Source of the DNA: Amphiscolops sp. MND2022
Lineage: Eukaryota
Direction of reading: 5' to 3'
DNA length: 64,000 bases
NCBI GenBank assembly: GCA_964187785.1
Contig: OZ076409.1
Coordinates: 56,296,001-56,360,000, forward strand
Shown in pieces: positions 13,480 through 45,200 of the stretch. A program made the translations under genes and the position numbers. The notes beneath the pieces were generated by a model. That model did no database searches. It was given only the letters and a program-made list of their open reading frames with translations, and was not told the origin of the DNA. The number at the start of each line of letters is the position of its first letter. Position 1 is the stretch's first letter.

Positions 13480-13615
13480 ATGACAAAAGCCTATAAAAAG
13501 ACCGGTCTTCTTTCGTTTATTCTTTTGATAATTATTCTGCTCGCAGTTTCCCATTTCTACTATGGTTCTTCAATCACCCAGATTCCCAATATAATCAATA
13601 CCACAGTCAGCAGAG
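13480..13615 (+). CDS. Putative exon 1a of methyltransferase copy B: type II signal-anchor
   Basis: MTKAYKK-TGLLSFILLIIILLAVSHFYYG-SSITQIPNIINTTVSR: basic tail, hydrophobic helix, start of stem; donor not certain (AG|GAAAG at 13616 gives the required phase 1). Confidence 0.55.
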
Positions 13616-14607
13616 GAAAGGTTCCCTTATTATCTGGTTTTTCTGAAGGACCAGAGAGTGATACGAGAGCCACCTCGGATCTCTCGAAACTATTACTAGC
13701 AGGCATTGTTGCTTAAACTGTCAAAATTTGGTATTAAACTTGAATTATTACTATTTTTTTTGAAAACATTTGTATGACATTGAAAACATTGAAAACATTT
13801 AAACTGTGAAAACTTTGTATTGAACTTAAATTATTACTAACTTTTTTGAAAACAATTGTTATGCTCAACTAACAAAGATTTATTGAAAGGAGATATGATA
13901 CCTATTTTGTTTTGGAACCTGGAGCTCAATGTGTCCATCTGGCTTCAGTTTGTAGTTGAAAACTTTTAGTTATATAAAAAACTGCTAAGATGGAAAGTAT
14001 CTTATAAAATTTTCATGTACAATGTAGAAACATCGGGAGTTAAATCGTCTGGTAATGATATATGCAACCACCAATGCAAAATTACTCGAAATATCTAGTG
14101 TAAAACATACCGGAGATTCCTTAGGTAAAACAACCCGAGTTTGCAAATTAAAGTCGGCGCGAGAATTAATTACCATAACGTAGTCAACTTACACAGACAT
14201 TCGATGAACGTACTGTCTCTTAATGAGATTTGTGCTTTCTTGCGCTTTTCGGATCAAAACACCAGGCATTTTGCAGGCAAATTTTCCCCGATTTCAGGTA
14301 TTTTTCATGCATTCCAGTTTTTTCTATGGTGCCTTCTTAGGTGTAGTTGCAAGAAAGTTGAGTCAATTTAGCTCAAGCCATTTGTACAACGTTTTATCGA
14401 CTGCAATTGTTCTTTGAATAATTTGAGCTAGCTCAAAGTGATTTTTTCCAAGCGTGTCAGTTTTTGAGAACTAAAAACTTTCAGTTTTTCAATTTGTGGG
14501 CAATTCCACAGAAAATATTACGTAAAAAGAAACAACACTTCTGAGGCTTACCTTGAGTGGGGAAGCGATGAAAAGGTTTTTCTGAACATATTCAAACATG
14601 TCTGTAG

Positions 14608-14758
14608 CAGTGACGTCTAATAATACGACTAACACTAGCAATGACGTCAACACATTAGTGTGTCCAATCTGTGGGGCTACCAAGTCATCACTAATTACTC
14701 TGGGTGCTAAGACGCTGGGCCCCAAATGGAACCCTCACTTTAACCTCTCCTGGGTAAG
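14608..14758 (+). CDS. Exon 2a of methyltransferase copy B (stem plus first CxxC)
   Basis: TAG/CAG tandem acceptor; AVTSNNTTNTSNDVNTLVCPICGATKSSLITLGAKTLGPKWNPHFNLSWV; donor AAG|GTCAGT in phase 2 joins exon 3 to give WVRCSKC. Confidence 0.8.
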
Positions 14759-15377
14759 GTCAGTATCCGGTCAATGGTACAAAAAACGCCATTCTACTCC
14801 AGTTAACCTTCTGTAGACCTTAGGAAACAAAATTGAGCAAAACGTTTATTAGAATTCTATCGAGAGCGAGGCATCAATTTTTTTTACAAAAAGAGGAGAT
14901 CGTACCAAATGAAAACAAGGTTTGGATAAAGTTTTGGCAATTTTTTTTTGCGTGAACGTTCTGTTTAGAGAATACAATGATTCACTGTGTAAACCAATCA
15001 ATTAGTGTATTCTGGTCAAAACGTGTACCAGACTAAAGTTAATTTTAATCATATTTTGTATAGAGATGTTAATGTATTCTTTCTGCAGCAGTAAATTTCA
15101 AGTTCATGTACAGTTTCCGTTGCTGGCACTCAATTGTGAAAGTAGCCTTTTTGCAGCAGTAACTTTCATGCACAGTTTTCATTTCTGGCGCTCGTTTTTT
15201 CACAAAAGGTTCCACACACCTGTCTTCTTCAACTAAAATTCTTTTTAAATTATTCCTTAGACGGTATTCAAGCTCGCTGTCTCGCAGATACTAGAAGGGA
15301 CTGAACGTTCGGATGCGTTCTTTTTCCAGAACACTTTGACATACCTATTATCATTCGCAAATTGTAAATTCTTTTCC

Positions 15378-15464
15378 TTTCTTTTCTGAAATCTCATCTA
15401 TGTAGTGCAATTTTTGGGACCGTCCCAAAAATTGCACTACATAGATGAGATTTCAGAAAAGAAA
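15378..15464. repeat. Second copy of the 87-bp perfect inverted repeat
   Basis: Identical to 12767-12853, carried by the tandem duplication. Confidence 0.97.
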
Positions 15465-16090
15465 TTTCGTGACGAGTGTGTATGCACGCTAAAAAGCCAC
15501 TATGATGACGGCTTTTTCATACATCAAGCAAATATTCATTTCATGATTTTTTTCACAATGATTTGTGGTTCAGTTTTCGTTTTCGTGTGATCTCTAGTTG
15601 AACAAAGTGCGTGAAACAAGTCTTTTTAATTGTCGAGTGTTGTACTATTGGACTGTAATGCGAACTGGAGAAACAATTTTACCAACAAAAAATTCATTTC
15701 CACTCCTTACTTTTTTTAGCGTACCGCTTTAGCTATCCATGCCAATGTAAATTCTTTCCCTTCTGAAATCTGATCTAGGTGGTGCAATTTTTGGTACTAG
15801 TGTGTATACGACGACGTCTTCTCCATACATCAAGCAAAGATTATTTTTATGAATATTTTCACGATGATTTTTGGTTCAGTTTTCGTTTCCGTTTGATCTC
15901 TAGTTGTCAAATCTTTTCAACTGTCGAGTTTTGTACTATTGGACTGTACTATGAAATGAAGAAACACTTTTACGAACGAAACTCAAATTTACTTCCATTT
16001 CTTACATACCTATCTAGCTATTCATGCCAGTGAATCCTGCCATCTACAATTGTGAAACTGCAGTTTCACAACAGTTTCCATGGAGAAAAG

Positions 16091-16226
16091 ATGACAAAAG
16101 CCTATAAAAAGACCGGTCTTCTTTCGTTTATTCTTTTGATAATTATTCTGCTCGCAGTTTCCCATTTCTACTATGGTTCTTCAATCACCCAGATTCCCAA
16201 TATAATCAATACCACAGTCAGCAGAG
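16091..16226 (+). CDS. Duplicated exon 1b (signal-anchor)
   Basis: Copy of 13480-13615; base 16227 is A where 13616 is G. Confidence 0.45.
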
Positions 16227-17218
16227 AAAAGGTTCCCTTATTATCTGGTTTTCCTGAAGGACCAGAGAGTGATACGAGAGCCACCTCGGATCTCTCGAAA
16301 CTATTACTAGCAGGCATTGTTGCTTAAACTGTCAAAATTTGGTATTAAACTTGAATTATTACTATTTTTTTTGAAAACATTTGTATGACATTGAAAACAT
16401 TGAAAACATTTAAACTGTGAAAACTTTGTATTGAACTTAAATTATTACTAACTTTTTTGAAAACAATTGTTATGCTCAACTAACAAAGATTTATTGAAAG
16501 GAGATATGATACCTATTTTGTTTTGGAACCTGGAGCTCAATGTGTCCATCTGGCTTCAGTTTGTAGTTGAAAACTTTTAGTTATATAAAAAACTGCTAAG
16601 ATGGAAAGTATCTTATAAAATTTTCATGTACAATGTAGAAACATCGGGAGTTAAATCGTCTGGTAATGATATATGCAACCACCAATGCAAAATTACTCGA
16701 AATATCTAGTGTAAAACATACCGGAGATTCCTTAGGTAAAACAACCCGAGTTTGCAAATTAAAGTCGGCGCGAGAATTAATTACCATAACGTAGTCAACT
16801 TACACAGACATTCGATGAACGTACTGTCTCTTAATGAGATTTGTGCTTTCTTGCGCTTTTCGGATCAAAACACCAGGCATTTTGCAGGCAAATTTTCCCC
16901 GATTTCAGGTATTTTTCATGCATTCCAGTTTTTTCTATGGTGCCTTCTTAGGTGTAGTTGCAAGAAAGTTGAGTCAATTTAGCTCAAGCCATTTGTACAA
17001 CGTTTTATCGACTGCAATTGTTCTTTGAATAATTTGAGCTAGCTCAAAGTGATTTTTTCCAAGCGTGTCAGTTTTTGAGAACTAAAAACTTTCAGTTTTT
17101 CAATTTGTGGGCAATTCCACAGAAAATATTACGTAAAAAGAAACAACACTTCTGAGGCTTACCTTGAGTGGGGAAGCGATGAAAAGGTTTTTCTGAACAT
17201 ATTCAAACATGTCTGTAG

Positions 17219-17369
17219 CAGTGACGTCTAATAATACGACTAACACTAGCAATGACGTCAACACATTAGTGTGTCCAATCTGTGGGGCTACCAAGTCATC
17301 ACTAATTACTCTGGGTGCTAAGACGCTGGGCCCCAAATGGAACCCTCACTTTAACCTCTCCTGGGTAAG
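17219..17369 (+). CDS. Duplicated exon 2b (CPICG exon)
   Basis: No differences seen from 14608-14758, including acceptor and AAG|GTCAGT donor. Confidence 0.75.
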
Positions 17370-17989
17370 GTCAGTATCCGGTCAATGGTACAAAAAACGC
17401 CATTCTACTCCAGTTAACCTTCTGTAGACCTTAGGAAACAAAATTGAGCAAAACGTTTATTAGAATTCTATCGAGAGCGAGGCATCAATTTTTTTTACAA
17501 AAAGAGGAGATCGTACCAAATGAAAACAAGGTTTGGATAAAGTTTTGGCAATTTTTTTTTGCGTGAACGTTCTGTTTAGAGAATACAATGATTCACTGTG
17601 TAAACCAATCAATTAGTGTATTCTGGTCAAAACGTGTACCAGACTAAAGTTAATTTTAATCAAATTTTGTATAGAGATGCGAAGTGGAAATTAGTCAAAT
17701 GCGTAAATTAATATAGTGTAGATGAGTCAAACCACGAATTTTAACCACTTAGTGAAACGATTAATCAAATAGTGTATTGAGTATCGAAACGTAATGAGTA
17801 TTTTAAAGAAAAACGCGTTGTTATTGGCTATTTATCGAACTAGCACAATTTTCAATGTATCGTAATGTAGAATTGAAAATTGTAAAAAAATCACACGTAA
17901 CAGTTTTGTCCTTTCAGAGCTTGCAATTTCGATATTTTCAAAATTCACAAACTTAGCTTGCAAGAGCGAAATTAGAAGGACATTCCAAT

Positions 17990-19460: not shown

Positions 19461-19566
19461 GTAAATTAAAAGGACAAAGCACAAAAGGATGCTATCCCAC
19501 TGTAATGAACTTTTCAAAGCTCAAAACCTAAGATCTTAAATTGCTTTTCGCTTATGTTGGTATATC

Positions 19567-22500
19567 TATCTTGATCTTATGACGTAATCAAGTAATCTTT
19601 TTCTTTCACCTAAATACCAGACTGTAAATTGGTTAGACTATATATACGTGACTTGAATGTAAAGTATATTCCTCACTAATTCACATTCATATTCACACGT
19701 TGAAGTGTATCTTGAACTGAACAGTCAATTCATTTTAACCATACACTTGTTCTTTTTTCTAGACCTAATACTGCAGCTCTGTTAGCGTCTCGTTTAAATT
19801 ACTTCCTTTTATCTGTTTTCTGAAACGAAATCGTTTTGATCTAAACCGAAGCATGACAACAAAACAAACAGTTAAAAACAAGTATTGTCACTGGTGCAAC
19901 TACGTTCTTCGTTTGCTTTTCCATTTTTTTGTAGGACCTACTCGGAGTTTGTTCGATGTTTCATATAGGTACAATTTCCTCTTTCTTCACTGATCAAAAA
20001 TTCAGTGATGTGGCCTCGTTTTTGGTACATCTCAACTCTGTAATAATCACTTCCGTGATTCGACTTTCCGTCAGTTCAACTATCTCTACTAACCTGAAAG
20101 ACGGTTCTACATTTTGTCGGAAGGGTAGACACCTTCTGTACTTATCTGAAAGACGGTTCGACATCTCGTGTCGGTACATCATTACCCTTTTGTACTAACC
20201 AAACAATTTTGATTCGACTCTTTGTCGGTACACCGTTTTCGTACAAACCAAGATAATTTTTGATTCGACCTATTCGTCGCTACAACTGTATTCTAATGAT
20301 AATTTTCTAACGTTTTGACCTCACTGCATTAATTGCCTTTGTTGTCGACAAATTAATTCTTGATTTCATTCCTCGATAATTTTCGCCATTCATCCCCCAC
20401 TCCCTTTTTTATTGAAATCATGTAACTCATATTCTTTTCATCCCTATATTTTTGCAATGATTGTACTTATAAAGCTCCTCAATGAAAAAATTGTTGAAAC
20501 CTTCTTTCAGTAGCTCCTTTATCCTAAAATACTTAGTTCCTTTGTACCCATATTATTCTCTCTTTCACCTTCACCCATTCTCAAATCTTTTACCAGGTCA
20601 CCACCAGAACATTTCAACTTCTCTCATCTGTTCCACGTTCATCACACCTCTTTCATTGTTCCCAACCCCCTTCCCATGATCCCTTCCTCTTTCAAGTTTC
20701 CCCCTCTCACCTATTATGTCCACCTCCTCTTCATTTCGTTTTTCACTGTCCTCTTCATTAAATACCTATTTCTCTTCCCAGAAAACACCTCCGTACCGAA
20801 GATTTTAATCTCTATCCCCCTACGGCATATCCAGACCTGCATAGCGATTTTCAATTTCACTGCATACTTCTTCACTTTAAACTTCATTGTCATTCTTCAT
20901 CATGACCACTCCTCCATCGTCATAATTAACATCTAAACTTTGTGAAATTAAAACTAGCTTCGGCAAATTACTGAACAATACTACAGTTGAACCACCAAAC
21001 TTTCTTTTGAAACACACCCCGAAGACATTTAAGCTGCTCCTCACTTTCATGAACATCTTGACTCATATCTCTATTTCATAGATTGAACCTCATTCGTTGA
21101 CTGAAACTCCCATTGAACCTCACCTTGCAATCCCTTTCACCCACTCTCTCGTAATTTCGGAACCCATCCGGAAGAATATATATCCTTCCAATAACCATCT
21201 CTCCAGGTTTTAAGAAGAAACTTTCTTTTTCAACATGTCTTCACACCGTTCTCAATTCAAGCACTACCCCGAAAGGAAAAGAAACTCTGTTTGAAGTTCC
21301 AAATTTTGAACAAATCCGCTCTATTGGAAAAATTCTCGATAACTAATCTGGGACACAGAGTACCAGGACGCTTTTAAAATTTTCCATCACATTTTCAAAA
21401 TGAAGGGCTCCTCCCTTTTATCATCAAGAATGATGATTAAAATCCCGAATTTTACAACCTTCATGATTTTCTTGTTGATCATTTCAATTATGTCCAATAT
21501 GATGATGAGAATCTAGATAAAAGTCTTGATTTTTTTTTACTCTTCTTCGTCCATTCCTAACATATACTCCTCATTCACCTAATATTGATCTTACCTCTGA
21601 AGTCTCTCCTCAAACTCGTACTTCTGCCTATAACGTTCTGGTTAACTTTCATGCTATTTCCAATCCTAATCCTAAATTGGATCCTCCCCTTCCACCTCCA
21701 ACAACAAGTCAACCTTCTACCTTTCACTCACCACGAATGTATCACAGCCTTCTACTTTCCGTTCTCGCATTCCTCGAACCACAACGTCACACACTCAAAA
21801 TCCACCTCGTCTCCTTTCATCATTTTCTAAGCCACTTTCTATAATTCAAATTTCTTTTCCTATAACAACACAACCCCACCCGTCCTCATCTACTATGTTG
21901 ATTCCTCCAATTACCTCTTTCACTATTCCTCAATCATTTTCACATCCACCTCTCAATAAAACTATTAACTGTTACAATCTTCACGCTTCTCTCCAATCCT
22001 CCTTTCAAACTTATCCAAACCCTTTTTTCAACAACCTTCACCACCCAATCATCTTCCACCTTCCTATTTACCTTTGATCACTCTATCTGATCCGATTAAA
22101 CTCTTTGGTGTCTTAGATCATGTTTATCATTTAGAAGACATCCTTGCACACCTTAGTGCTTGTGTAACGTTTCAACTTGATCCTGAACCTTTAGAGACAC
22201 AATCCTTATTCAACATCGCACTCTGGTCGTACATCATTTTTATATTGTTCTTTTACAGGCACTGCCTCAAATTAGTTTGATCGCTTACCTCAAAGTTATA
22301 AAGACGATTGGTCCTATTTTTTTTTACAAACTTTCAAGAAACAATTCTTTTCTCAAAAACATGCGCACCATGCTCAACATGACACTCTTTCGTTTGCGAA
22401 ACAAGACAATGAAAATGTTTGCCCTTGTGCCCTAAGTGTTGAAACCCTTGTTAAACAGTGATGTCAAGATGAATACCGATCGACCCTCAATCTCAAATGT

Positions 22501-25500
22501 AATGAAGTTTTTAAACTTTTACACGCAGTAGCCTGAAAAAGATTTTGAAATTTCCAAAAGAATGTCAATCATATCTCTAGTTCTCTTGAACCTTCCATTC
22601 CAATCTTTTCTCATGTCAATATGGATGATTCTGAAGATATCACCCTTTAAAAAACCAGAAGTCAAAAACTTTCTGTATTAATTATTTCACCCTATGACAC
22701 TATAAACAAACCCCTCTATTACAGATAACTCTTATACACCTCAACTTCACTCTGTTCATTCCATTATAAAAAGTAAAACACAATTTAAAATATATCGTCC
22801 ATCTTGTCACAAAATGAACGCTTCTGGATATACATGTTTTCGTCGCCTCAATGCTCTCCAAAGTAACAAACCTCACTCTAAGTCTCTTACACCTACGTTC
22901 TAAAAATATAAATCTCGGGTCACCTCTAGTTGTAACAACTCGAAATTCAACTCCCGCTCTTTTCATTTTGACAGAAATAAATCTAGTTATGATCAATCTT
23001 TACAAAAATCCCAAAGGTTACAAACACCTGGAATACGTTCACGTTCATCATTTTACTATACTTCTCCACACAGTCTTTACAAACACCCTTCACGTTCTCG
23101 TGAACCATCAAATAGTTATAAGAACATACTCTGTAAAAGCGAAAAAATTGTAAACGCTTACTGTCAAAGTCAATCACATTCTGTCTTTTGTGATATTCTT
23201 CCCTCCATCTTAGATCAATGATCTCTTCGACAGAAAGATGTTTCTCATTCGATAACACTTTTTTTCAGTACTAGTATAATTTCCCACGAATTTGAACTGT
23301 CACATCACTATAAAAACTTGAACAGAACCCAACATATTCGAAATTCTGATAGCTTTTCTTTTAAAATCTCTCTGAATTTTTTTTGTAGACATGATTGTTT
23401 CCTGTCACAACTATCAATCTTCGTAGACAAGATTGCTTCTGTCATTTATTTTGCTACTTCTTCACCAAAACAAAATTTGAAAACAAGTAGCTCCAATACC
23501 GTTCTGATATTTAATTTCTTTCACACTTATACTTTCTTCTGACTCACGCTTGATCTCTTCACTACTCTTCTACTCTTCTCCACGAGGACATCTTCTGAAC
23601 ACTCAGATTCCAAGACTGCCTACCCATTTCTCACACAATCGTTGACTTCACCCATCAGTACATTTCTGTCCCTCATTGATTTGACTTCGATTCCACCTTT
23701 GATACAACCTTCTCCATTGTCATCCACATCTTCTGCAACACCCACTACCTCTGTGTCATCCACATCGACACCTGCCTTCACCCACCTTCCACATGTTCCA
23801 CCACAGATACCGTTGCCACCAATACTCGTCAGAACTATGTCCTTGTGTTCGCCAGTTGACAACACATCTCCAGACCCGCGAACCCCGTCATAAAAAACGG
23901 TATCAACTTGCTCCTGGTGAAGCTGGGTCGATCATCAAAAGAATCGTCCACACTGTTGTATATAAACGAAAACTGACTAGACCCTGTTTGAGAAAAAATG
24001 CGTTCCTTGCAAGGATCTTGCAAGATCCTTGTAAAAATGCAATTACTTGTAAGATCTTGCAAGGAAATTTGATTCTCGTCATCGATGCACTGAAGCATAA
24101 GGAACAATACTTAGACTCTCTCATTATTGATCAATTTTACGAAACTAAAGGCAATAGTTTTACTGAAATCTCTAATCAAAGTTTCCGTTTTGTGCTGACA
24201 ATATTTGGAAACCCCCTACAACAAAACTTTACTTTAAATGCGCCTCAAATCAAATCAAATCAAATCAATTCAACCCTCATTCTGCTTGAAATAACTACTC
24301 TAAATCTAATAAAAATAACTTGGCATGCTTTTCATCATTTTGTTCACCCTCCCTTTTTTTTCTAATCACCCTCTCTTGCAAATCATCATATCCGTCACTT
24401 CTTTTGATAAATCACTTAATTCCTTGCGGAATCTAATATATTCTCTGAACGATGTTGATTAGTACTCTCATACACTATGCTATATATTCATTATTGCTTA
24501 TCTGTACAATTTTTTATGTGCTTACATTTACAAGAGTATAATCTTTTCTCATAAAAGGTAAAATGTCCCAATATTCGGCTATCAAAACATTTTGACACTT
24601 GTTCCGATTTTCACTTTTACAAGATAATTTTTCATAATTTTTTTTTCATTTTCTTTCCCCTACCGTTGTAACCATCTTCACTTTTATATTTCACCCTCCT
24701 CATATTCTTTTAAGTCTCCTCACAGTTTAAAATGTTAAAACGTTCCTCCGTTTTTTGAACCCAAACCCAATTATTTTTACATTTTCGTCAATAGTTTCGG
24801 TTCTAATCCAAAGTTTCTCCAAATTTCAAATCTTCTAGTTTCACAAGAAACTTACTTACCTTACTCAATGATATTCATTTGAATGACTCCCCTCCGATTG
24901 TTCTTTTAAATTCTTCACTTTTGTAAAACGCGCCACTTGTTGAATTTTTTCAATGGATGTTGACTGATGATGACTTACGTTTCGAACAAAAACTTTGTCA
25001 TTTTACTAACGAAACGTTTTTAACCCTGCATTTCCGTTCATCTAGAATTAAGAAAACAAGGATTAATGCTAAGTTGACATGAAAACGAAGTCTCTTTATT
25101 CTTCCCTGAAAACGAAAGCCGCTCTTCACTCCAAAATTTAACTTTCTCCTACCAAGTTGGTCCTTTCTAAGTCACTTCAAATGTAAAAAGCCCCCGAATG
25201 AAACATGATGAAAGTATAGATGAAGATCAAACATGGTGGAAGACTTTTGAAATTGGAAATGCAATGCAAAGCTTCTAAGTTCTACCAAACGTTGAATTTG
25301 ACTCTAACATAACAAATTTTGTCCACTGTTAAATTCACCTCCGGATTTAGTAAACTTACCCTCCATGAAGCGAGTACTTTCCGCATAACTCTATGTTAGG
25401 AACGAAGGAATAAAAATTTGCAAAAATACACCTGAAAAAAACTTTGTAAAAAGATTACCTCTTGAATACACCAATTTAATAAAACCACTACCTCTATTCA

Positions 25501-25972
25501 AAACTTCTGAAGAGCCTCTATATCTTAAATCGAACTCCAAACTCATACCTAAATTCGAACTCTAATTCTATATTTTCCACAAACTTTCTGGTTCAACTCT
25601 TATGAATTTCTCCAAGTTGCTAGATAATTTCTCGTCTTTAAAACCCGGTCGGATCACATAACCATCTTAATGCTATGACATTATCATTAAACTTTTTTCA
25701 TTCACCTATTCACCAGACTGTAAAAGGTCCAGACTAATTATATGTGACTTGAATGTAAATGATATTGCTTCATCGATTCACCTTTGTATTCACAAGTTGA
25801 TTTGTATCTCGAACTGAACAGTCAATTCAATCTTCTCTTTAATTTGTTCTTCAATCTGTGCAGCTCTGCTAGCGTCTCGTTCTCTGTCTCAGTTTTCTAA
25901 ATTAAAGTCATTCTGATCTAAACCGAAACATCCGAAACATAACAACAGAACAAACAACTAAACATAAGTACT
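19567..25972 (-). mobile_element. Old, heavily degenerate LTR retrotransposon (probably Gypsy)
   Basis: Diverged direct repeats about 19567-19890 and 25665-25972 (shared CCAGACTGTAAA, GTGACTTGAATGTAAA, GAACTGAACAGTCAATTCA, GATCTAAACCGAA); TGG-start PBS candidate at plus 25647-25664; pyrimidine run at 19905-19929 as PPT; only weak protease/RNase H-like remnants on the minus strand. Confidence 0.6.
23975..24070. repeat. Short array of CTTGCAAG(G)AT motifs, likely DNA-transposon/MITE subterminal fragment
   Basis: CTTGCAAGGATCTTGCAAGATCCTTGTAA...CTTGTAAGATCTTGCAAG; similar style array at 63705-63830. Confidence 0.45.
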
Positions 25973-27869: not shown

Positions 27870-28860
27870 TTGAGCAAATTCGTGGTATACGTTTCATACA
27901 AAAGTGTAAATACTCGAAAGCGACAAAACTTGGTATCCAGTAGTCTTTTTTGAAGGTTATCAACGAACTTTTTTTGAAAATGGCCTCAAATTACCACAGA
28001 AACCAAAACCACAAAAACTTGTTTTTCGGCAACTTAGAACAAATGTTGTGCAATTCACGAAAATTTTTGTAGACTAGGTTTTTCATTGACCCGAAAGTTG
28101 AAGCAATAGGCTGCCTAAGACTCGACTTGGCAAAAATGGAATAAGGTTCCTCGAAGTTGAGAACGAAGCAATCAGATGTGTTTTTCCATCGACGGCATAC
28201 TCTCAATTTTGAACATGATCCGAAAATTTTCCACAAATTGGAAGTTACTCAGAATCAGGGTTGAAACATGTAGCTAGGAGTACGGGTTTCAAACAAATGC
28301 ACAACTGCAAAAAGTTATAAACTTTAAACAAAACTTCCTTGAACTCATGCAATTCTTTTTTTTTCGACTTTTCTGGAAAAATATTTATTATTCATTAAGC
28401 TCCAAACGAACTAAGCCTTTCAAAGGAGAGTTTTGCCCTTTTCCAGGTTAAAAAAGTACGCAGAAATACCCCTAGCAATCCAAAAGTGTTTGACACTTCC
28501 ATGAATTTTTTGAGTGAATTTTTTTTGTAATATTTCGTATGTTATTAGAATGATGTAATTGTTCTCTCTCGACTGAATCTGGTATCCTGAAGGCATTTTG
28601 GAAAACACATATGCATTTGGAAAATCAATTTGGTACTTAGCACATTCTTAAATGAGGTGATCATTCTGATCTCAACTGAAACAACAACAGAACAAACAAC
28701 TAAACACAAGTACTTTGAAGTTCAATAATGCGTTTTCATAGTGTATTTGCTACATTTGAGCCTCAAATCATGTCGTAGTAGAACAGATTGGGGCGGAAAA
28801 TATACACTGGTCAAATAAACGTTGGAAGTTATACGTTGGTCAGTGGGCGTCTCGTTGAAA
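27870..28860. repeat. Diverged copy of the repeat that forms the 1.2-kb units at 55311-57712
   Basis: Co-linear blocks: GTTGAAGCAATAGGCT, GGTTCCTC..A.TTGAGAAC, TTTGAGCCTCAAA.CATGTCGTAGTAGAACAG, GTCAGTGGG.GTCT.GTT. Confidence 0.7.
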
Positions 28861-28880
28861 TGAACGTGTTTGTATTTCAG

Positions 28881-29758: not shown

Positions 29759-29933
29759 GTAAAGACAGAGAGAAGTTGACCTTGATCAGGTCAGTGGATG
29801 TGAGCGGTGACGAGGTGGCAGACAACAGCATCGACCTGTGGCTGGGGTCACACGTGACCCAAATCACTTCCTATCTTCGGCCTACAGGAAGTTGCGACCT
29901 GAGGGAATATTATTCCAGGAATTCCCGTTACAG
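29759..29933 (+). pseudogene. Exon 5 of methyltransferase copy B with frameshifting 16-bp deletion
   Basis: Lacks ATAGAGCATTTTGCTG (copy A 961-976) at 29856/29857, bounded by TGA microhomology; removes IEHFA and shifts the frame. Confidence 0.85.
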
Positions 29934-29948
29934 GCAGGGGGTACTTTT

Positions 29949-35841: not shown

Positions 35842-36236
35842 CTTTTCCTTATCTATATTACCAAAAAGCTGAGTATTTTAGGCTAATGGCACTACATTAT
35901 GTCTCGGAAAACTCAGAAAAACTTAATGACTTGAAAACCAATATGATTTGGCTGTAGATTTGTTACATTGAAAAAGTTTTAGTACAGTAATTTTAGCTCT
36001 AAGGTGGCAAAGAACCGTGATCAGAAGTTATAAATAGACTAATTCATGGTTAATTTGACTTTAAAAATTATGCATAACTTAGAAAATGAACAGCGTGGTT
36101 AAAATAGTCCTGTTGGGTTGCCATTTGTCTTTGTTTTCACTATAATATATATTACTTCGGCCACAAATAAATCGTGACCGAAAAAGTATCATTTCTCACC
36201 ACCAAATGACTTATACTTCCATTGGAACTCACTGCT

Positions 36237-36764
36237 CCCAAGTAGGCACCATATCTAAGGCTCAAAAATAGCAAAAGAACTTCAAAGTGTGAAAATATTC
36301 TCTTCTAGAGTACCCGAAAAACACAAAAGTTCAATTGAATTGGGGAGACTTTGAGATTGTTCATCCATTCTGTCGCAAATCATCAAAAAAATTGAAGGGG
36401 GCCTTTTTGGTGAGAAAAAAATGCGAAAAAGTCCCACAATGCCGACAAAACTGGAAGGGGAAACCCTTTGCGATTTTTCAACATCCGTTCTGTCAGAAAA
36501 CTCCAAAAAATTGAAGGGGGACCCTTTGGGAATTTTTTTCGAAAAAAGTCTCTCAGAGCCAAAAGTTTTCTAAGGGAGTACCCTTTGGTCCCGTTGAGTT
36601 TCTTAGATGATGTAAAAACACTACTTCGTAAGCTTGTGCGCCATTATTTATAATTTTGCTAAGTAAGAATTGTAAGAAAAGTGGACCATTCAGAGTGAAA
36701 TGTCAACTGAAAAAAACTACCCACTGTAATAGTCGGGCTTTTTTCACTTAAGCGCCGACTAAAA
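36237..36764 (-). mobile_element. Non-autonomous Helentron-associated (DINE-1/HINE-like) element, one end truncated
   Basis: Same family as 54543-55213: ends TAGTCGG...GCGCCGACTAAAA, internal GAAGGGG..CCCTTT tandem units; absent from the paralogous intron of copy A. Confidence 0.7.
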
Positions 36765-36835
36765 CACAACTAATCGATAAGAACCTATTGAACTCGATAA
36801 CATCGTTCTGTGGCAAAAATCAGTGCGTTGGAAAA

Positions 36836-37755
36836 CAGGGTTGCTTTAAAATACGATTTTTATTCGCGATTGATATGGTTCAGAGTTTTATTAATTTTCC
36901 TTAATTTAAAAAAAATTATCTTAAAAAACTAGGTGTACGTGCGAAATTACACGTAAGAACACTAGTCTTCCACATTTGTCGATTCCCGGTCGATTTTGTT
37001 GGCTGGAATGAACAAAGAAAGCCGTTCTTATCTAGTTCGTGCTTCTCGTCTTTCTTGGTTGACCTGACGAATTTTGTAATGTTCATATTAGCGCCTAGCT
37101 GTTCGCCTTGTCGCTTTTTGCACGTCTCCTTGTGCTGCCCCAACCGCACGACTATGCCTTGCATCCCCCCCATCGCAAAGGTTTTGCATGCTTATCGCCC
37201 ACGGCCCCGAGTTGCCTTAAGGCACATAGCATTCTTGTTAATTTCTTCTTTCGTTCATAATTGGTTCAACATTTATATCAACATACTTGTTAAGATGAGA
37301 TGCTGTGGTCTAAACATGTTACAGTCTCGAACACTATTGAAACCGTTTTGGAATTCCAAAACGGTTTCAATATTGTTCGAGACTGTAACATGTTTAGACC
37401 ACAGCATCTCATCTTAACAAGTATGTTGATATACATGTTGAACAAATTATGAACGAAAGAAGGACAGAATCACATAATACTGCACTGTACCTTTGCTGTT
37501 CGTCGAAAAAAGGTCGAAACTTCGTCTGTTGGGCGTCCGCATATCAATGTGAAACGCAGCTGATAGATAGATCACAATTTTACTTCTCTAGGAAACTAAT
37601 ATGGTAGATAATTTTGATAAACTAAAGGCAAGCATATGTCAAACTATACTAGCAAAGACATAAAAACCTACGTGGCAATACAGAACCAATAAATCCATAA
37701 AAATCGTTTGATTTTTAAAAATTTTCATTCTTTGATTTAAATCAGCGTAACCTTG
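36836..37755. mobile_element. hAT-type non-autonomous DNA transposon
   Basis: Imperfect TIRs CAGGGTTGC / GTAACCTTG; 8-bp TSD TTGGAAAA (36828-36835, 37756-37763); empty site with a single TTGGAAAA in copy A near 4833. Confidence 0.8.
37245..37462. repeat. 218-bp spacerless palindrome (109-bp arms, 3 mismatches)
   Basis: Centre GGAA|TTCC at 37353/37354; arms compared base by base. Confidence 0.95.
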
Positions 37756-38039
37756 TTGGAAAATCATTTCCCTAAAACACTTTCAAAGGTTTGTCTAGAA
37801 ACTGAGCTTGGGTGGATTACATAAAAATGCATAATAAACGTTTTCGGAAATTCCAATTACAGTCAATATTAAAGAGCTTTGATCTGTTCAAAAATGGCAG
37901 GCATGTATGTGTTTTCGCCTGATACGAGTTGTCACTTGATATGAGTTGTCGCTATGCCGTGAATTTTAACCATGTGTTTGACGAAGTTAGAAATATAACG
38001 ACAAAAATGAGAAACATCCCCCTGTCTGTCTGCCGGTAG

Positions 38040-38138
38040 GCCAATCTGCCCAAAGCTGACCTGGCCTCAGATTACCACCTGAACTATTACTCAGGCAAAT
38101 CTATTCACGTGGCATTGACAAAACACGGATTTTGTCAG
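38040..38138 (+). CDS. Exon 6 of methyltransferase copy B
   Basis: TAG|GCC...CAG|GT; ANLPKADLASDYHLNYYSGKSIHVALTKHGFCQ; open, mostly synonymous differences from copy A. Confidence 0.85.
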
Positions 38139-38329
38139 GTTAACTTTCAATTAAATGATGCCTAACATCATGTCTTACTTACTCTTTCATGTACCGATCG
38201 TCAAGGCACTTGGAAATCCCAATAAGTTATGATTCTCATATTCAGATTTTTGTAGCAATAATACAAAAATGTAACAATAATTTTCAAAAACAAGTCATTG
38301 AAACAATTTCTAAATTCAAAATTTGCTAT

Positions 38330-41300
38330 TGTCATAAATGACTCATCAAACTACTATTTGAACTAACTGAAAAACGTTGTCTTCTAAATGCATGATTCAC
38401 TGGATTACCTAATACTGATGAGAAAAGACTGAAGATATCCCGGTTTCATTGACATCTTTTCTAACAAATGGCGCTCCTGGGAAAAAAAAGAACTTTATTG
38501 GAACCTTTACCCTTGCTGCATTAAAGAGAGTGCTTGGGTAGTTTTTTAAATCTTTTTTCGCAGCTTTCCGCGACAAAAAGGCTGAACATTTGTGTTTTTG
38601 TTTCTTTAGCTTAGTACATCAGGTCTCTGATTAGAGGAGATACAGTTTCAAGTGGTTCTCTCAGAAAGGAAACTTCTAAAATCAACAAACTCAGACTTCT
38701 CTAGGCAAGGAGGTTTACTCGAAGTTTTTTTTGGGTGTAAAGTCAACCTTGTAGATGGTCATATTCTCAAAAGTTCGGTAGAAACCAAAAACGTTGTGTC
38801 CGTCGCCGGTATCTCTACCATTGCATTCACAGCTGGTTTTTTAGGTCTAGGTGCGTCCTGATCCGTCCAGATCTCCATTTCGTTTTCCGGCTCTCGCTAG
38901 CGTCTTGGTTTTCGATCTACGTTTCGCGCGCTTCGTTTCTGTTCCGCGCACTAAAAAATCTACCGCTCCGGGATCTTTTTTTCTCAGACTCGACAGTGTG
39001 TTCGCCTTTCACGCATCTACGAACGGATAAAGCGAAATTCGTGTGCTGTTTTCAATCTACCACTAACCACAGAACAACGAAGATGGCCAACCTGAAAAAT
39101 CAGACCCTGCAGAATCAGTTCAAGCTGCACGACATCAAATTCACGAACTCATCCAACTATTTAGCATTTCAACTGGATCTCAATGGTACCCCAATGCAGC
39201 TGAATGAGATACTTGCAGCACTCAAAACAGTTGCTTCCAAACTTGAAAACCTTGCTGACAGCTCACATGACTCTTGATTACTTAGAGCCATACTTGCAGA
39301 AATCACCTGACGCATCAATCCTTGTCCTTCATTACGCAGACAAAATAAGATCTCGACAAACACAAAGAAACAATGTTTCCCTCAGAAGCCATCTTCCAGA
39401 CTCAGTTACGGGATCTCACCGCCACTTTGAAGAAGAAACGACATTCTCGATGTGACTGCCGCAAAACCTTGGTGTTACTTACAACAATATACTGACCGTA
39501 GTAACTTATGTGCTTGTGTACCTCCTTTTGAATCTTCCAACATACAAATGACTGATACTACTCAAGTAAGTCGAATCCAACCCGAGGAGTTCAAATTCGA
39601 CGAAGACCAAGGAACATTCATTCTGCCGCCCACGGAACAACAAACCATTCTCCCCGCAAACCTAACACAATCGCCACAACTCTATACAACAGCTAACCCA
39701 TACTACAACAGAGGTCACATCGCCTACAATAACAACTTCTTCAGTGTTTGCCATCAACTGTACCGTGCCAGCAACGCCGACAACGCAGAACCATTCTCTT
39801 CATCAAGGCCCGGATGCCCATCAACGCTTCCCACTAGAGCAATCAAACATTATCTCATCACAACCTATCATTTTAGCGCCATTCGTCCAACAGTTTCCAA
39901 CTCTCCACAACGTAGTGGGATGTGTTTTCCATCAAACACAGATTGCTCAAGCTTGTCTCAACTCCGCCAACCGCCCAACTGCTCCGTCTCCATATATCCC
40001 GGCTACTGCTTCGCTTGCTTTTCCTGTACAACCGAACCCAAACATATATACTACCGCTCAACCAGTATCACAGTCTGAAATGCAAAAATCACACTGGCGC
40101 TCCCATCCACCTCGGCAGTTTGTGAGTAATACATGCATCAAACTACCGCCAATCCGAACACCCAAATTCGATGGTGATCCACTTGCTTTCCACGATTGCA
40201 TTAATATCTTCAAGGCCTCCGTTAACGAAAACACTTCCATATCCCAAACACATCGATTTATTTATCTGCTGAACTCAGTCTGTGGAAAGGCTAAAGACCT
40301 TATTCGAGGTTATTCTTGTAATCCTGCATATTACATATTTGCCTTGGTTGAACTAGAATCTTGTTTTGGATCTCCACAACACATCGTCACTGCATACATA
40401 CACCGCCTTGAAAACTGTGCCCTCATCTCATCCCAGAACCCCCATACACTTGTTTCCTTCTTCACATTCCTGAAACAACTCGTCCAAACATTCATTATCC
40501 TCCGATTCACCGCGGATCTTCAATCGTCAACACTACTCACTATTGCTGAAGAGCAACATCCGCATAACTTCCTTCTCAAATGGACAGAACACACTGTCAA
40601 GAACAGCATTCTCTTCGCGAGTTTGCTTTGTATTCAGCAATGGCTGGAGATTCAAGCCAGAGTTCTTCAAACTGTTGAACCGAACCTCCCTCGACCAAGT
40701 AAACCATCATTCCCGCTCTCGGGATCATCGTCTCCTTCGCAAAACACCCAAAAGAAACAAATTGAATGTCCGCTCGGTCACCAACATCATTCGTCCACAA
40801 AGTCTCGGTTCCTCCATCCAAGATCGAACACAGCATGTTCAACGTTTGCATCACTGTTTCAACTGCCTCGGTCAGAGCCATTTGAAAAAAACTGCCATCA
40901 TCCAACCGCTGTTTCAAACCCAATCGCGGTCCACACCTTTGATTCCGAGACGCTACAACGTGAAAAAGACTTATCCGGACAAGCCACAACCTGCTCCGGC
41001 ATCCACGCAAACTACTGAAATCCGATCAAACGCCACAAATGCTGCAAAAGCAATTCACCAGAAAGGTTCTTCTAACAACTCTCGCCAACATCAGTTCAAC
41101 CCCTCACAGTTCATTGCTACTGCAAGTGTTGACCCAGGGAAGAAAAAGAAAACGCCTTTTGACCTCCTTCAAGTGATTCCTGTGTCTCTGCTCAATGGAG
41201 ACTAAGTTTTTGACACTTATGCCTAGATCGACCCTGGAAGCACACGAACATACGTCCTCGATAGCATCAGTCACTCTCTCGATTTAGAAACTGGACACGC

Positions 41301-44300
41301 ATTTGATTTAGATGTTCAGTTCATGAACTTGTCTCGTTCCTTTTCCGTCTGCCCCACAGCATCCAAAAATGCCCCCTACGTCGAAATGAATCACAATTCG
41401 AAGTCAAAAACGCCTATACAACCACTTGCTTCAACCTTCCCCCCGGCAAATATATCCGAACTGAATGGCATCTGCCAATCGAACTCAATGCTCCGCCACA
41501 TCAAATGCTCCGACATTGACAAAGGACGCATTGGCGTCCTTCTTGGAACATCGTGCGTACAGTTTACACACGCTTTAGAAAAGATCCGAAGATCCCCAAC
41601 CGACCTGATGGTCTCCACACTGAAGTCAGATGGACCACCGCCGGTGAGTTCATGCATCGGAAACGAGCAAAATCGTCCTTTAGAAAAAATTTCGTCTTTT
41701 TCGCCGCAACCGAAATCCACCAAAACGATGCCGATCGGATTCCACCTGACATGCTTGAACAATACTGGCCAGTTGAAAAAACCGTCAGTGAACCCACCGA
41801 ATCCTTCGTTTTCTCCGATGTCGACAAAGAAGCAATCCAAATACTTAAAAAAACGTGTCGCCACAACGGCCTACCGTGGAAAACTGACGATCACCTATCG
41901 AACAATTACTACCCGCCCTCAACCGTGTCCGTTCCCTCGAAAAACGTTTGATTCGCAATTGAACTAAAGAAAAGGTTCGACGAAACTGTTACCATTGATC
42001 TTGAGAAACACTACGTTAAGCCCGTTATAATGCTGAATCCGCGGCCTGAAAAAATTTGGTACTTACAGTAGAAAACCCTAACAAACCCGGCAAAGTCCGT
42101 CGCGTAGCAAATGCTGCCTCGAAGTACAAAAATGAATTTTTGAACTCCAATATTCTCGCAGGACCTGATCTTCTTGCAAACCTGCTTGAACTCATCCTCC
42201 GTTCCCCTGAACACGCCGTTGGTGTTCAGCCAATCTTGAAGCAATGTTCATGCAAATCGCAATCCACCCTGAAGATCAATCAGCCCTCTGCGTCCTTAAG
42301 ATGTCCGATAACCATGTACTCCAATAACAAAACACCCGCCTCATCTTTGGTGCCAACCGCTCGCTTCGCGCCTTATTTGTACTCCGTCGTTGCGCTCAAG
42401 ATCTTGCTTCCCAATTCCCTGACGTAATGCAAGCCGTGCTTAACAATTTTCATAAGGATGATTTCATCCAATCCTTTTCAACCCCAGCTGTCGCCCGCCG
42501 ATTGACAAAAGATCTACTTACCGTCCTCCAGCGTGGAGATTTCCGTCTTACAAAGTTCATCTCCAACAACAGTGATGCCCTGTCTTTCATTCCCGCCCAA
42601 GACCGTGTGAAATCTGCATCCGAAACAAAGGTTTTAGGTCAAACGTGGTGTCTTCGCACTGACTCATATACCGAACCGCCACCAAAGTCCGTTAATAATC
42701 CAACAGCACTCAGACAACGTTTCAGCCTGGTTTCATCAATATTCGACACGATCAATTTACTAATCCCGTTAGTGATCCAATTCAAGATAATTCTTCAATC
42801 TCTCTGGAAACTTGGGACCATGCTATTCCCGCTCACATTCAAACCTCCGTGAATAAACTCACTGATTGTTACCGCGCAATGCCGACCGTCTCCGTACCTA
42901 GCCGTGCTTTCCGATCAGCCACAACCGTGGAACTCCACAACTTCACAGACGTATCCAATTCCGCTTTCACCGCTGTCATTTATGCTCGCCATCCAACTTT
43001 TTCGCAAACCTCAGCTCAACAAGTCTTCGTCATCGGAAAGCACCGTGTCTCCCCGATTAAACAAAAAAGCATTCCAGAACTGGAACTTGAAGCCGCGGTC
43101 CTTGCAGTCCGTCTGCTCCGAATAGTCCGTAACGCATTTTCTTGCGCCTTCCCAGTTGTGAAGTTGTGGACCGCTACTTGTGTCGATTTGTACTGGATAC
43201 AGCGACGGAACAAACTTAAGAGTTTTGTCGCCCAAAAAGTCAATGAAATTACTCTACATTCTGACCCGCTCGACTGCAAATATGTTCCAACCAAACAAAG
43301 CCCTGCAGATCACGGTACCTGTGATCTCACCCCCAACGAAAGTTCCGCCAAATGAATCAAAGGTCCATCCTCTCTCAATGAATCGCGCGAATATTGGCCC
43401 AAACGAACATGTAAAGCCATCGTTATTCATCAAAAGTCAGTCTCTTTGACACTCAACGTTTCTCCACCTGGAGCAATCTACTAAAAGTCGCCGCCAACGT
43501 TTTCCGTTTCGTCCGTCGCCTGCGTTCACCGACTTCACCTTCAACACTGACCTCTGAAGACTTTCGCAAAGCCAATCATGCGCTTATCAAGCAATCTCAA
43601 TACCTCTCGTTTGCCTAAACTTTTGATCAACTGCGTCGAAACTTGAATCCGACCTCGCGCGACAAACTCATACCTTTCCGACCGTTCATCGATCAAGGTT
43701 CACTCTTGCGCTCTCATGGCCGCCTCGTATACTTGCCACTCGCAAGAACTTTGACCTGAACTACAAGCCTCTCTGAACGATGGGATTGCCGCTCTTCAGA
43801 AGAGAATTCCTCACGCTGAAGAAATCGTTGGGATTTTCATCCTCGTTCTGCGCTTCATTTTGGTGGTCACTTGGAAAGGGGAATCCAGACAGCAAAAAGA
43901 ACACTTCTGATTATCCTCGCATCTCAATAACTGAAGCTCGATTTTTTTCACGAAAATATTAATTGAAACCGAGCTGATGTTGAACTCGCGACCACTCACC
44001 CATGTCAACGACCAACCAGAAAACGAAGATCCTCTATCACCAAACCACTTCCTTCTAGACCGCCCATTCGCAAACTTACCACCCATTGTTTTTGAAGAAA
44101 GGTAAACCGCTGTCTTTCAATTCCTTGAAAAAAGTTCAAAAAGTTTCCAATCTTTTTTGGAAACGATTCTTGAAGGAGTGCTTGCCAACTTTGGATCGAC
44201 GACAGAACAAAGGAACGCCCTGTCTCAAAGTCAACGATATATCTTGGTTGCTGCAAGATTTCACTCCTCGAGGCATTTGGCCACTGTGAAAAATAACCGC

Positions 44301-44631
44301 CACCCACCCTGGAAAAGACGGAATTACCCGTTTGTGCACTGTTAAATTAGCATACGGAACTTTCGAACGCCCGGCAGTCTCGCTTTCCCCGGTTTTCTCC
44401 CCGTAACGAATCGTTCGCGCAATTATTTTTCTTCACCACATAGCTGCCTTGCCCCTCTCTCCTTCTTGCAGCTTGGGGGGGGGTGGTTGGTTTTGCCTGT
44501 CATAAATGACTCATCAAACTACTATTTGAACTAACTGAAAAACCTTGTCTACTAAATGTATGATTCACTGGATTACATAATACTGATGAGAAAAGATTGA
44601 AGATATCCCGCCTTGATAGATTTTTTCTAAA
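38330..44631 (+). mobile_element. BEL/Pao LTR retrotransposon with both LTRs and 5-bp TSD, frameshifted
   Basis: LTRs 38330-38466 and 44498-44631; TSD GCTAT (38325-38329, 44632-44636) with empty site TTTGCTATGTATCC in copy A; PBS TGGCGCTCCTGGG at 38469; G9 tract 44475-44483; gag KLPPIRTPKFDGD (DUF1759-like), CFNCLGQSH knuckle, protease IDPGSTRTY, RT GKVRRVANAA/LAGPDLL, Pao RNase H (ELHNFTD, IPELELEAA), C-terminal WKRFLKECLPTL/RGIWPL (DUF5641-like); integrase core largely deleted. Confidence 0.95.
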
Positions 44632-45050
44632 GCTATGTATCCAAATTTGAAACTTTTACTATTTCTTGGCTTTAAGCTTGTCGACATTTGACTTTTGGCA
44701 AATGATGCGAATTCTCGGCATCGATAGTATTCATGAGATAAAAGTGACAAGTTTCTGACGGCGAGCAGAAATAACGTTCAAATTCAAAACGGAAATCTAA
44801 AGCCATGACATACTTTATCAATTCTTTATCTTGGAAAGTGCGATTGTAGATGTGTTTCCTTCGACGTTATACCACGAACCAAGGATTATCTTTAGAAGTA
44901 ATCACTTCGATGTTTTGGCGTCGCTACTTGTCTGCCTGCAAATTTTTTATTTGGAAGAAAAGTGCCAATATAACAGATCCAAATGTGGAAATTAAATCAA
45001 ATTCACACGAAACTGGAAGTTCAGTCAAGTTCTTAAATACATGTGTTTAG

Positions 45051-45200
45051 GTGGCGATGTACAAAATGACAGACACAAGAAATAAATTCAAAAGTTACGA
45101 ATACTGGCCCGACGTGTCCAAGTGTGAAATCCACAACACAGTGGAACAATTGTCTCAAGGGGCATTCAGAGTGGTCTACAGGAAATGCCGTCCCAATTAG
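45051..45200 (+). CDS. Terminal exon 7 of methyltransferase copy B
   Basis: TTTAG|GTG; VAMYKMTDTRNKFKSYEYWPDVSKCEIHNTVEQLSQGAFRVVYRKCRPN*; co-linear with 5831-5980. Confidence 0.8.
   Translation: MAMYKMTDTRNKFKSYEYWPDVSKCEIHNTVEQLSQGAFRVVYRKCRPN

Follow-up and report, generated by a model that had tools for sequence, protein, structure and literature searches.

A probable tandem pair of seven-exon genes for anchored zinc-ribbon methyltransferases in Amphiscolops sp., with lumenal glycan O-methylation as a plausible function

The window analysed here is a stretch of 64,000 nucleotides from contig OZ076409.1 of Amphiscolops sp. MND2022 (positions 56,296,001 to 56,360,000, forward strand), and its features are collected in Table 1. 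Together with the sequence just upstream it very probably contains two seven-exon genes in tandem, copies A and B, which with a third paralogue elsewhere encode anchored zinc-ribbon methyltransferases of approximately 340-350 residues, copy A being intact and copy B frameshifted. The tandem family described in the initial annotation is thereby confirmed for A and B, and extended by copy C, which is found on another chromosome and is partly intronless. The intact copy A specifies 338 or 352 aa according to the donor used at the end of exon 1. Its spliced protein aligned over its full length with the products of three homologous genes that lack introns (54-62% identity, E 1e-102 to 1e-112), and the exon order and the junction positions agree with these three genes and with the partly intronless copy C. 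Because of this alignment and agreement, the seven-exon structure is evidently not a chance arrangement. Ten other ORFs of the window gave no match in Pfam, and Rfam gave no match across the whole window.

Table 1. Gene copies, duplication and retroelements in and next to the window. Positions are those of the window unless stated otherwise.
Feature	Position	Strand	Remarks
Copy A exons 1-3	G000:C1:56293215-56295987		just upstream of the window
Copy A exon 4	494-620	+	
Copy A exon 5	863-1053	+	intact, SHVIEHFADP; Methyltransf_11 above gathering threshold from the ORF alone
Copy A exon 6	5143-5241	+	
Copy A exon 7	5831-5980	+	with stop codon
Tandem duplication	12455-17679	+	2.6-kb unit, 99.7% identity; copy B exons 1-2 repeated at 16091-16268 and 17222-17369
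Copy B exon 1	13480-13657 (or -13615)	+	start codon, Lys-rich tail, hydrophobic anchor of about 20 residues, stem with NTT
Copy B exon 2	14611-14758	+	NNTTNTS stem and first half of zinc ribbon (CPICG)
Copy B exon 3	28881-29046	+	second half of zinc ribbon (RCSKC), conserved NLT sequon
Copy B exon 4	29394-29520	+	SAM-binding motif I (VLEQGCARG), CLEPD; ends at GC donor AAAG/GCAAA
Copy B exon 5	29759-29933	+	broken by 16-base deletion; ends at GC donor ACAG/GCAGG
Ty3/gypsy-like LTR retrotransposon, degenerate	29946-35841	-	in copy B intron 5; RT_RNaseH at 31586-31789, minus strand
Copy B exon 6	38040-38138	+	YHLNYY with His near-invariant in a 16-sequence alignment; out of frame here, premature stop inside
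BEL/Pao-type retroelement	38306-44632	+	in copy B intron 6; DUF1759, Peptidase_A17; not in copy A
Copy B exon 7	45051-45200	+	C-terminal strand (FRVVYRKC) and stop codon

The seven exons of copy B are collinear with intronless homologues of 336-351 aa. An ORF of 339 aa had been assembled here from seven exons in the initial annotation; the exons are all present on the plus strand, but the ORF is chimeric, with exon 5 taken from copy A (863-1053) and the rest from copy B. The motifs described for it, MTKAYKK followed by a hydrophobic stretch, CPICG...RCSKC, VLEQGCARG and YHLNYY, were all found, as were the seven sequons (NTT, NNT, NTT, NTS, NLS, NLT and NIS). The SHVIEH motif, listed for the chimeric ORF, is missing from copy B exon 5, where a 16-base deletion has removed it. 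Exon 1 has two possible in-phase donors, a canonical GT after position 13657 and AG/GA after 13615; a donor AAG/GT after 13620 was rejected, being of phase 0 with no phase-0 acceptor at exon 2. We infer the junction between the anchor exon and exon 2 from sequence. Sequencing runs were searched with 5.9 kb of copy A and with the 569-base stretch of exons 4-5, and the matches were confined to four runs of DNA type from a single sample. An ORF equivalent to copy B exon 1 is found upstream of copy A (L003:7218-7355), and the N-terminal anchor is contiguous with the rest of the protein in the intronless homologues. GC donors are required at introns 4 and 5, and the junction position at exon 4 is pinned by the unsplit copy C together with the intronless homologues. 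The locus is of interest for these conserved GC splice donors, with positions fixed by intronless paralogues.

Compared with the intact paralogues, copy B exon 5 lacks 16 bases between positions 29854 and 29855, with TGA microhomology on the flanks. The loss takes out IEHFA of SHVIEH and throws the reading frame into a stop in exon 6, a frame-disrupting lesion by which copy B would count as a pseudogene in this assembly. With this deletion, copy B as assembled is predicted to yield no active enzyme. A second version of the B locus, 95.5-98.9% identical, occurs on the public contig L010; it shares both retroelement insertions and has exon 5 intact, so the break in copy B is recent, polymorphic or an assembly error. 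The LTRs of the Ty3/gypsy-like element in intron 5 (29946-30246 and 35529-35841) are 84% identical, and the element begins just 13 bases past the donor of exon 5, since some 390 intron bases found in L010 are missing here.

That copy B is actually a working second gene, with the deletion introduced during assembly or carried by a rare allele, is rather unlikely, and would fit any functional reading of the family. Besides the whole exon 5 of the near-identical L010, the divergence between A and B speaks for it, showing purifying selection overall (dN/dS 0.38) and just two replacements in exons 3-5. The deletion is also crossed by none of the unitigs from four DNA runs, but these leave 29569-29910 uncovered, except for one X3 unitig reaching 29651, and a hole of 340 bases carries no evidential weight on the deletion. 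The 3-base microhomology is typical of a genuine event, and the loss of about 390 bases beside the exon 5 donor on the same haplotype likewise argues for one. The copy B locus may be read as the record of a very recent gene loss, with the intact version at hand on a near-identical public contig.

Read from its sequence, the encoded protein is a class I SAM methyltransferase (Methyltransf_23/11) that carries a predicted type II anchor and an N-terminal zinc ribbon. From the ORF of copy A exon 5 alone Methyltransf_11 scored 33.7 bits against a Pfam cut-off of 21.2, and the full-length homologues reached 45-50 bits with Methyltransf_23 and 40-45 with Methyltransf_11, both above the cut-offs. Two of the three Pfam families named in the initial annotation were thus matched, while the third, Methyltransf_13, gave no match at E up to 0.1, and neither did Methyltransf_14. 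The glycine-rich motif I, the acidic residue ending strand 2 and the Rossmann-like seven-strand fold of class I enzymes are all present. The four cysteines of CP.C ... RC..C are conserved across animal members, in line with the zinc-motif methyltransferase family first described, and are predicted to bind metal. For the intronless homologue P0003 the AF2 model (pLDDT 84.7) has a helix at residues 3-34, a disordered part at 29-60 and a folded part at 61-336. Its best matches among solved structures were the NDP-sugar C3-methyltransferases MtmC, TcaB9 and KijD1, its top Swiss-Prot model match was NovU, and residues 60-110 of the model superposed on residues 9-60 of the TcaB9 and MtmC chains. Best structural matches to cytosolic enzymes of small molecules or RNA had been named as evidence against a Golgi glycan role; the best matches are indeed cytosolic bacterial enzymes, yet they act on sugars, so that the objection holds by half. 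Generic small-molecule methyltransferases (UbiG, BioC, phosphoethanolamine N-methyltransferases, TleD and RebM) scored nearly as high as the sugar enzymes. NCBIfam gave sub-threshold BioC and UbiG matches only, and the protein-language and ESM Atlas shape searches returned only generic bacterial Methyltransf_23 clusters. Among the Pfam hits of five family members (E up to 0.1) there was neither DUF579/Polysacc_synt_4 nor Methyltransf_29 nor the nematode DUF268 candidates. The family is tiny, unnamed in public databases and unannotated.

The basic N-terminal tail and the single hydrophobic helix recur in the intronless homologues of full length. Over 19 residues the best hydropathy window has a KD of 1.6-2.3 and lies no further in than residue 35, or residue 66 in P0059, a gene call extended at the N-terminus. 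Six of the seven anchored members have more Lys and Arg before the helix than after it, P0053 being level at 3:3. With the predicted exon 1 join, the protein has the short basic tail, one N-terminal helix, flexible stem and globular domain of a type II layout. Sequons of the types NL(S/T) and N(F/I)S in the folded domain are kept across the animal members, and NL(S/T) occurs also in the protist P0019; sequon counts in the anchored animal members are only about 1.5-2.7 times expectation.

A helix serving as a tether for a cytosolic catalytic domain, or an anchor-less cytosolic isoform from the exon 2 ATG as the main product, with the ribbon an ordinary cytosolic zinc site, would account for the same protein but is judged improbable. 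Every solved relative is cytosolic. Cytosolic proteins are where zinc ribbons are usually found, and the ribbon, unusual for a lumenal protein, is a point against lumenal orientation. The in-frame ATG at 14598 is close 5' of the copy B exon 2 acceptor and is kept directly 5' of this acceptor in both copies A and B, so that an anchor-less form could be made, and the join between exons 1 and 2 that would bring in the anchor is itself predicted. Against a cytosolic enzyme, the anchor lies within the same ORF in the intronless homologues, the basic residues precede the helix in those six of seven members, the folded-domain sequons are kept among animal members, and the protist relative P0019 has a hydrophobic N-terminus too.

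The carbohydrate link is consistent with the structural matches, the two conserved sequons, the several AFDB cluster matches that are entries named as glycosyltransferases, and the neighbourhood of one bacterial relative. This relative, P0044 (25% identity, pairwise E 4e-19), is encoded directly after Wzm/Wzt(Wzt_C) genes in an O-polysaccharide cluster. A search with P0044 gave four loci at 23-25% identity, and the three annotated ones had, respectively, a GT4 gene next door, an MsbA-like exporter and nothing relevant. The GT4 gene follows that of a distant bacterial relative. Glycan genes thus occur in just two of four annotated bacterial neighbourhoods, and the three further ones, at 23-25% identity, are probably too distant to be given much weight. 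The present genome has two MFS_5 loci; MFS_5 transporters are also found in animals without methylated glycans, a point against a glycan substrate.

The same topology and fold may instead serve a non-carbohydrate acceptor, in a methyltransferase, lumenal or close to the membrane, that modifies a small molecule, a lipid, a thiol or a secreted metabolite in the manner of membrane-anchored COMT/TOMT or the thiol methyltransferases of METTL7 type, a possible reading though not a likely one. The near-level scores of UbiG, BioC, the phosphoethanolamine N-methyltransferases, TleD and RebM, the absence of an NDP-sugar domain from the family and the lack of glycan genes in two of the four annotated neighbourhoods fit such an enzyme. 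Set against this, only the sugar C-methyltransferases also match the zinc ribbon and give the longest alignments, the closest bacterial relative examined sits in the Wzm/Wzt O-polysaccharide cluster, and there are the glycosyltransferase names among the AFDB matches.

A lumenal glycan O-methyltransferase is the reading we favour, as a plausible one that falls somewhat short of even probability. We infer the Golgi location, the lumenal orientation and the substrate. The N-terminal anchor would insert as a type II signal-anchor and leave the catalytic domain toward the ER/Golgi lumen, where SAM imported by an MFS_5 (SAMT-1/GoSAMT-type) transporter would be used for O-methylation of sugar hydroxyls on glycoconjugates, and the near-invariant His residues of SHVIEH and HLNYY would be positioned beside the sugar substrate as are His181 and His225 of TcaB9. 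Taken as a whole, the gene anatomy together with the lumenal glycan mechanism comes close to an even chance of being the best explanation. More tentatively, and with less likelihood, the animal and protist members would be the first identified eukaryotic lumenal glycan O-methyltransferases, derived by patchy, possibly horizontal acquisition from zinc-ribbon methyltransferases with which bacteria cap or decorate O-polysaccharides; introns, two of them with GC donors, would have been gained after arrival in the present lineage.

Innate-immune lectins target the O-methylated glycans of worms, molluscs, flatworms and microalgae, and such glycans are also a concern where algal biopharmaceuticals are made. 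In a 2023 paper on the C. elegans N-glycome the relevant methyltransferases are still to be identified (PMC7614267), and a 2025 microalgal review names no glycan methyltransferase (PMC12507850). The present family is a concrete and cloneable candidate, with an intronless homologue and the intact copy A at hand, and a good structural model points to two histidines for mutation. Should it act on something else, it would still be a membrane-anchored methyltransferase that is unannotated, restricted to certain lineages and of bacterial affinity.

Among known systems, MB-COMT, TOMT/LRTOMT and METTL7A/B are membrane-anchored animal small-molecule methyltransferases. They have a single N-terminal hydrophobic anchor and a class I domain as in the present family, but they lack the ribbon, belong to a different fold subfamily and were missing from the top structural matches. 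WbdD-type capping is carried out by chain-terminating methyltransferases of ABC-transporter (Wzm/Wzt) O-polysaccharide pathways. The bacterial relative P0044, encoded next to genes of such a pathway, has the ribbon, motif I and the SHV.EH, E.P and HL.Y motifs of the present family, but there is no similarity to the kinase or coiled-coil parts of WbdD, and the likeness amounts to one neighbourhood at 25% identity, P0044 itself being a putative methyltransferase.

TcaB9, KijD1, MtmC and NovU, like the present family, have at the N-terminus a four-Cys domain of zinc-binding type that packs against the methyltransferase domain. They are soluble, cytosolic and C-methylate 4-keto sugars, whereas the present proteins have a signal-anchor and a stem. 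The TcaB9 type also carries a C-terminal NDP-sugar-binding domain of approximately 150 residues (Methyltransf_14) that is missing here, and the alignments to TcaB9-type chains stop at about residue 268 of 416, where the present protein ends. Membership of the TcaB9 family is ruled out by the absence of this domain and of the Pfam matches. His181 and His225 of TcaB9 adjoin the sugar substrate, and Y76, H181, Y222, E224 and H225 are active-site residues that have been probed. In the profile alignment H181 and H225 correspond to the His residues of SHVIEH and HLNYY, near-invariant among 16 aligned sequences; the positions of Y222 and E224 show no conservation, and Y76 falls outside the aligned part.

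The proposed layout is shared by the plant Golgi enzymes DUF579/GXMT and Methyltransf_29/QUA2-like, with a short cytosolic tail, an anchor, a stem and a lumenal SAM-dependent domain. They are without a zinc ribbon and, because neither Pfam family matched, the present family is placed on another branch of the methyltransferase fold; membership of either plant family is ruled out by the lack of a profile match. Both the plant enzymes and the present family would rely on MFS_5 Golgi SAM transporters (10.1101/2021.07.06.451061).

The window carries animal-like DNA from a genome of 1.07 Gb, and a motif scan together with self-comparison of the window showed that the flagged gene belongs to a tandem pair, the 3′ part of copy A being collinear with that of copy B apart from two blocks that interrupt B and are not in A. 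Exons 1-3 of copy A were found in DNA fetched upstream of the window, and contig C9 carries a third copy, C, which bears out the tandem family initially proposed; assembly-wide searches using exon 5 and a family profile gave no locus beyond these three. In copy B, 13 bases past the exon 5 donor, a degenerate Ty3/gypsy-like LTR element begins; intron 6 contains a BEL/Pao element, and the 2.6-kb block with exons 1-2 is duplicated in tandem at 99.7% identity. Recent tandem duplications of 2.6-kb units (98% identity) and 1.2-kb units (97%) lie downstream of B. Pieces downstream of copy A match two further segments, so the A/B duplication unit reaches past the genes. In intron 2 of B, C strongly outnumbers G over 6 kb (GC skew −0.29 to −0.48); neither a tandem array nor a Pfam match was found there.

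Coordinates of the features described (window positions unless a contig or locus is named)
Feature	Position	Matching or second position
Copy A, exons 4-7	494-5980	
Copy B	13480-45200	
Collinear 3′ parts, A and B	1-6144	29060-45375
Blocks interrupting B	29946-35841	38306-44632
16-base gap, B exon 5	between 29854 and 29855	
Stretch without unitigs	29569-29910	one unitig reaches 29651
Sites separating the DNA runs	28600-30300	
C-rich stretch, B intron 2	20000-26000	
Tandem duplication, 2.6-kb units	46617-52539	
Tandem duplication, 1.2-kb units	55304-57714	
Pieces downstream of A	8817-9654	47833-48680 and 51164-52028
Intron 4, A and B	610-880	29510-29775
Unsplit intron 4 site, copy C	L009:4696-4740	
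ATG 5′ of exon 2 acceptor, both copies	14598-14610	L008:985-997
P0003 gene, ENA contig L006	6001-7011	
Packaging ATPase, L006	1-717, minus strand	
Polymerase-like ORFs, L006	10242-11212	
P0053 gene	L011:8142-8963	
MFS_5 (SAMT-1/GoSAMT/MFSD5-type) loci	G000:C5:67469999-67473824	G000:C5:67638493-67647448

With the open frame around copy A exon 5 as query, 1.84 billion protein representatives yielded full-length homologues of 336-351 aa; two, P0003 and P0051, come from intronless genes on metagenomic contigs. These, together with copy C, in which exons 2 and 3 are fused and likewise exons 4, 5 and 6, fix exon order and junction positions in A and B residue for residue. Copy A is modelled as seven exons with an uninterrupted ORF, its product being 54-62% identical to those of the intronless genes over about 273 residues (E 1e-102 to 1e-112), and this anatomy of the gene pair and encoded protein is very probably right. 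AG occupies positions −2/−1 in five of six donors, the exception being the canonical GT option of exon 1. In introns 4 and 5 the homologous residues are kept only with GC donors, AAAG/GCAAG and ACAG/GCAGG, both conserved between the two copies and a related contig and confirmed in position by the intronless relatives. The exon 1-2 junction has one usable acceptor, CAG/TGACG, of phase 1, and two phase-1 donors of exon 1 are present in A and B: a canonical GT after 59 codons, for a product of 352 aa, and AG/GG (A) or AG/GA (B) after 45 codons, for one of 338 aa, close to the 339 aa of the initial annotation. The seven-exon ORF described there holds for copy A, at 338 or 352 aa, but not for copy B, where in this assembly the frame is not open. 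Intron 4 starts GCAAGA after AAAG and ends AAAG before GTAAAGA, with the peptide KGK encoded at both ends, and the unsplit site in copy C reads AAAG GCGCAGA; by its sequence the intron looks as if born by local tandem duplication.

Copy B exon 5 is without 16 bases, TGATAGAGCATTTTGC, and TGA microhomology flanks the gap. The loss takes IEHFA out of SHVIEH and causes a frameshift that runs into a stop in exon 6, so that in this assembly the flagged locus does not encode the proposed ORF, which is a chimera of two loci because its exon 5 was taken from copy A. The divergence of A and B (dS 0.11, dN/dS 0.38, and just two replacements across exons 3-5) argues that constraint acted on both through most of their past. 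A public contig (L010), to which a mis-called protein with 95% identity to the query across the aligned region led, matches the B locus at 95.5-98.9% identity over 17 kb and has both retroelement insertions; it is the B locus from a different haplotype or from a very closely related genome. Exon 5 is intact there, and about 390 bases of intron beside its donor are missing from the window; the intact exon in a near-identical locus suggests that the break is recent and possibly polymorphic. Unitigs of four DNA runs leave the stretch around the gap uncovered, save one that enters it, and we regard copy B as probably broken and an assembly error as unlikely. At many single-base sites the runs fall in two groups, X1/X3 versus X2/X4, which points to two haplotypes, or two individuals, differing by about 1-2% there. 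For further work, the flagged locus is the wrong copy.

Public databases contain very little of this family: 17 proteins were found among 5.8 billion, none of them named, and almost all stem from genes called on ENA metagenome assemblies; diverged relatives are present in protist data. On its contig (stretch 1-12500) the P0003 gene has a Pox_A32-type packaging ATPase on one side and on the other two ORFs with weak matches to protein-primed DNA polymerase B (E 0.003-0.009). Both are hallmark genes of Polinton/Maverick elements, and given these matches on both sides P0003 may lie in or beside such an element.

As claimed for the flagged gene, the full-length animal members begin with a small number of basic residues and then a hydrophobic stretch (hydropathy 1.6-2.3). 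Of seven anchored members, six have more K/R on its N side than on its C side, and P0053 has 3:3; this is a predicted type II signal-anchor signature. Such an exon is present in A and B, and for copy C a candidate lies 2 kb 5′ of the ribbon exon. Two folded-domain sequons are kept in animal members, NL(S/T) past the ribbon, found also in the protist member P0019, and N(F/I)S past motif I; with sequon totals of about 1.5-2.7 times expectation in anchored animal members, they would be consistent with, not proof of, a lumenal domain. A cytosol-facing or anchor-less enzyme is very improbable, although a transcript starting in intron 1 could give a protein without the anchor: in both copies an in-frame ATG follows a stop just 5′ of the exon 2 acceptor. 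The P0053 gene has an in-frame TGA directly after CPIC, which the source gene call read as Trp, and translation of the contig locus does not reproduce the database protein.

A bacterial relative, P0044, has all family motifs at 25% identity (pairwise E 4e-19) and is no farther from the animal proteins than protist relatives are. Its gene lies directly 3′ of Wzm and of Wzt with a Wzt_C carbohydrate-binding domain, in a cluster with glycosyltransferases, epimerases and NeuB genes; a methyl group capping the chain end is known to signal chain length in Wzm/Wzt-type pathways. Among the best AFDB cluster matches, several carry names of glycosyltransferases or glycosyltransferase-domain proteins. 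Among three more distant bacterial loci annotated, a GT4 gene adjoins one, an MsbA-like exporter another, and the third has nothing relevant. An acceptor other than sugar is doubtful, and glycan O-methylation in the secretory lumen is our tentative reading. Two MFS_5 genes, about 170 kb apart on one contig, belong to the family of C. elegans SAMT-1 and plant Golgi SAM transporters (10.1101/2021.07.06.451061), a necessary but unspecific condition for lumenal methylation. That animal glycan methyltransferases are largely unidentified agrees with a 2023 C. elegans N-glycome paper, which still calls the relevant ones so (PMC7614267), and a 2025 microalgal review names no such enzyme (PMC12507850). 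On circumstantial evidence, the family is a good, testable candidate for this open question.

Pfam Methyltransf_23 and Methyltransf_11 exceed their cut-offs; the Methyltransf_13 signature, likewise proposed for checking, is absent. Near-invariant in the family alignment are E-G-C-x-x-G (motif I, its Cys invariant), C-x-x-P-D, D-x(4)-S-H-x-x-E-H, F-x-E-x-P, H-L-x-Y and a C-terminal R, and CP.C ... RC..C is common to animal members. In the AF2 model of P0003 (pLDDT 84.7), an N-terminal helix spans 3-34, its end overlaps with a disordered stem (low confidence at 29-60), and residues 61-336 form a compact domain. NovU was the top match among Swiss-Prot models, and TcaB9 and KijD1, like NovU bacterial NDP-sugar C3-methyltransferases, led the PDB sequence-profile search (E about 1e-9). 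Membership of the TcaB9 family is ruled out, since the C-terminal NDP-sugar domain of TcaB9-type enzymes and the Methyltransf_13/14 signatures are absent, and the proteins do not belong to the plant Golgi methyltransferase families. In the profile alignment, H181 and H225 of TcaB9, which are among the residues mutated in its deposited structures, align with the near-invariant His of SHVIEH and HLNYY. We class the family among the zinc-ribbon methyltransferases, as a new variant that is anchored and truncated.
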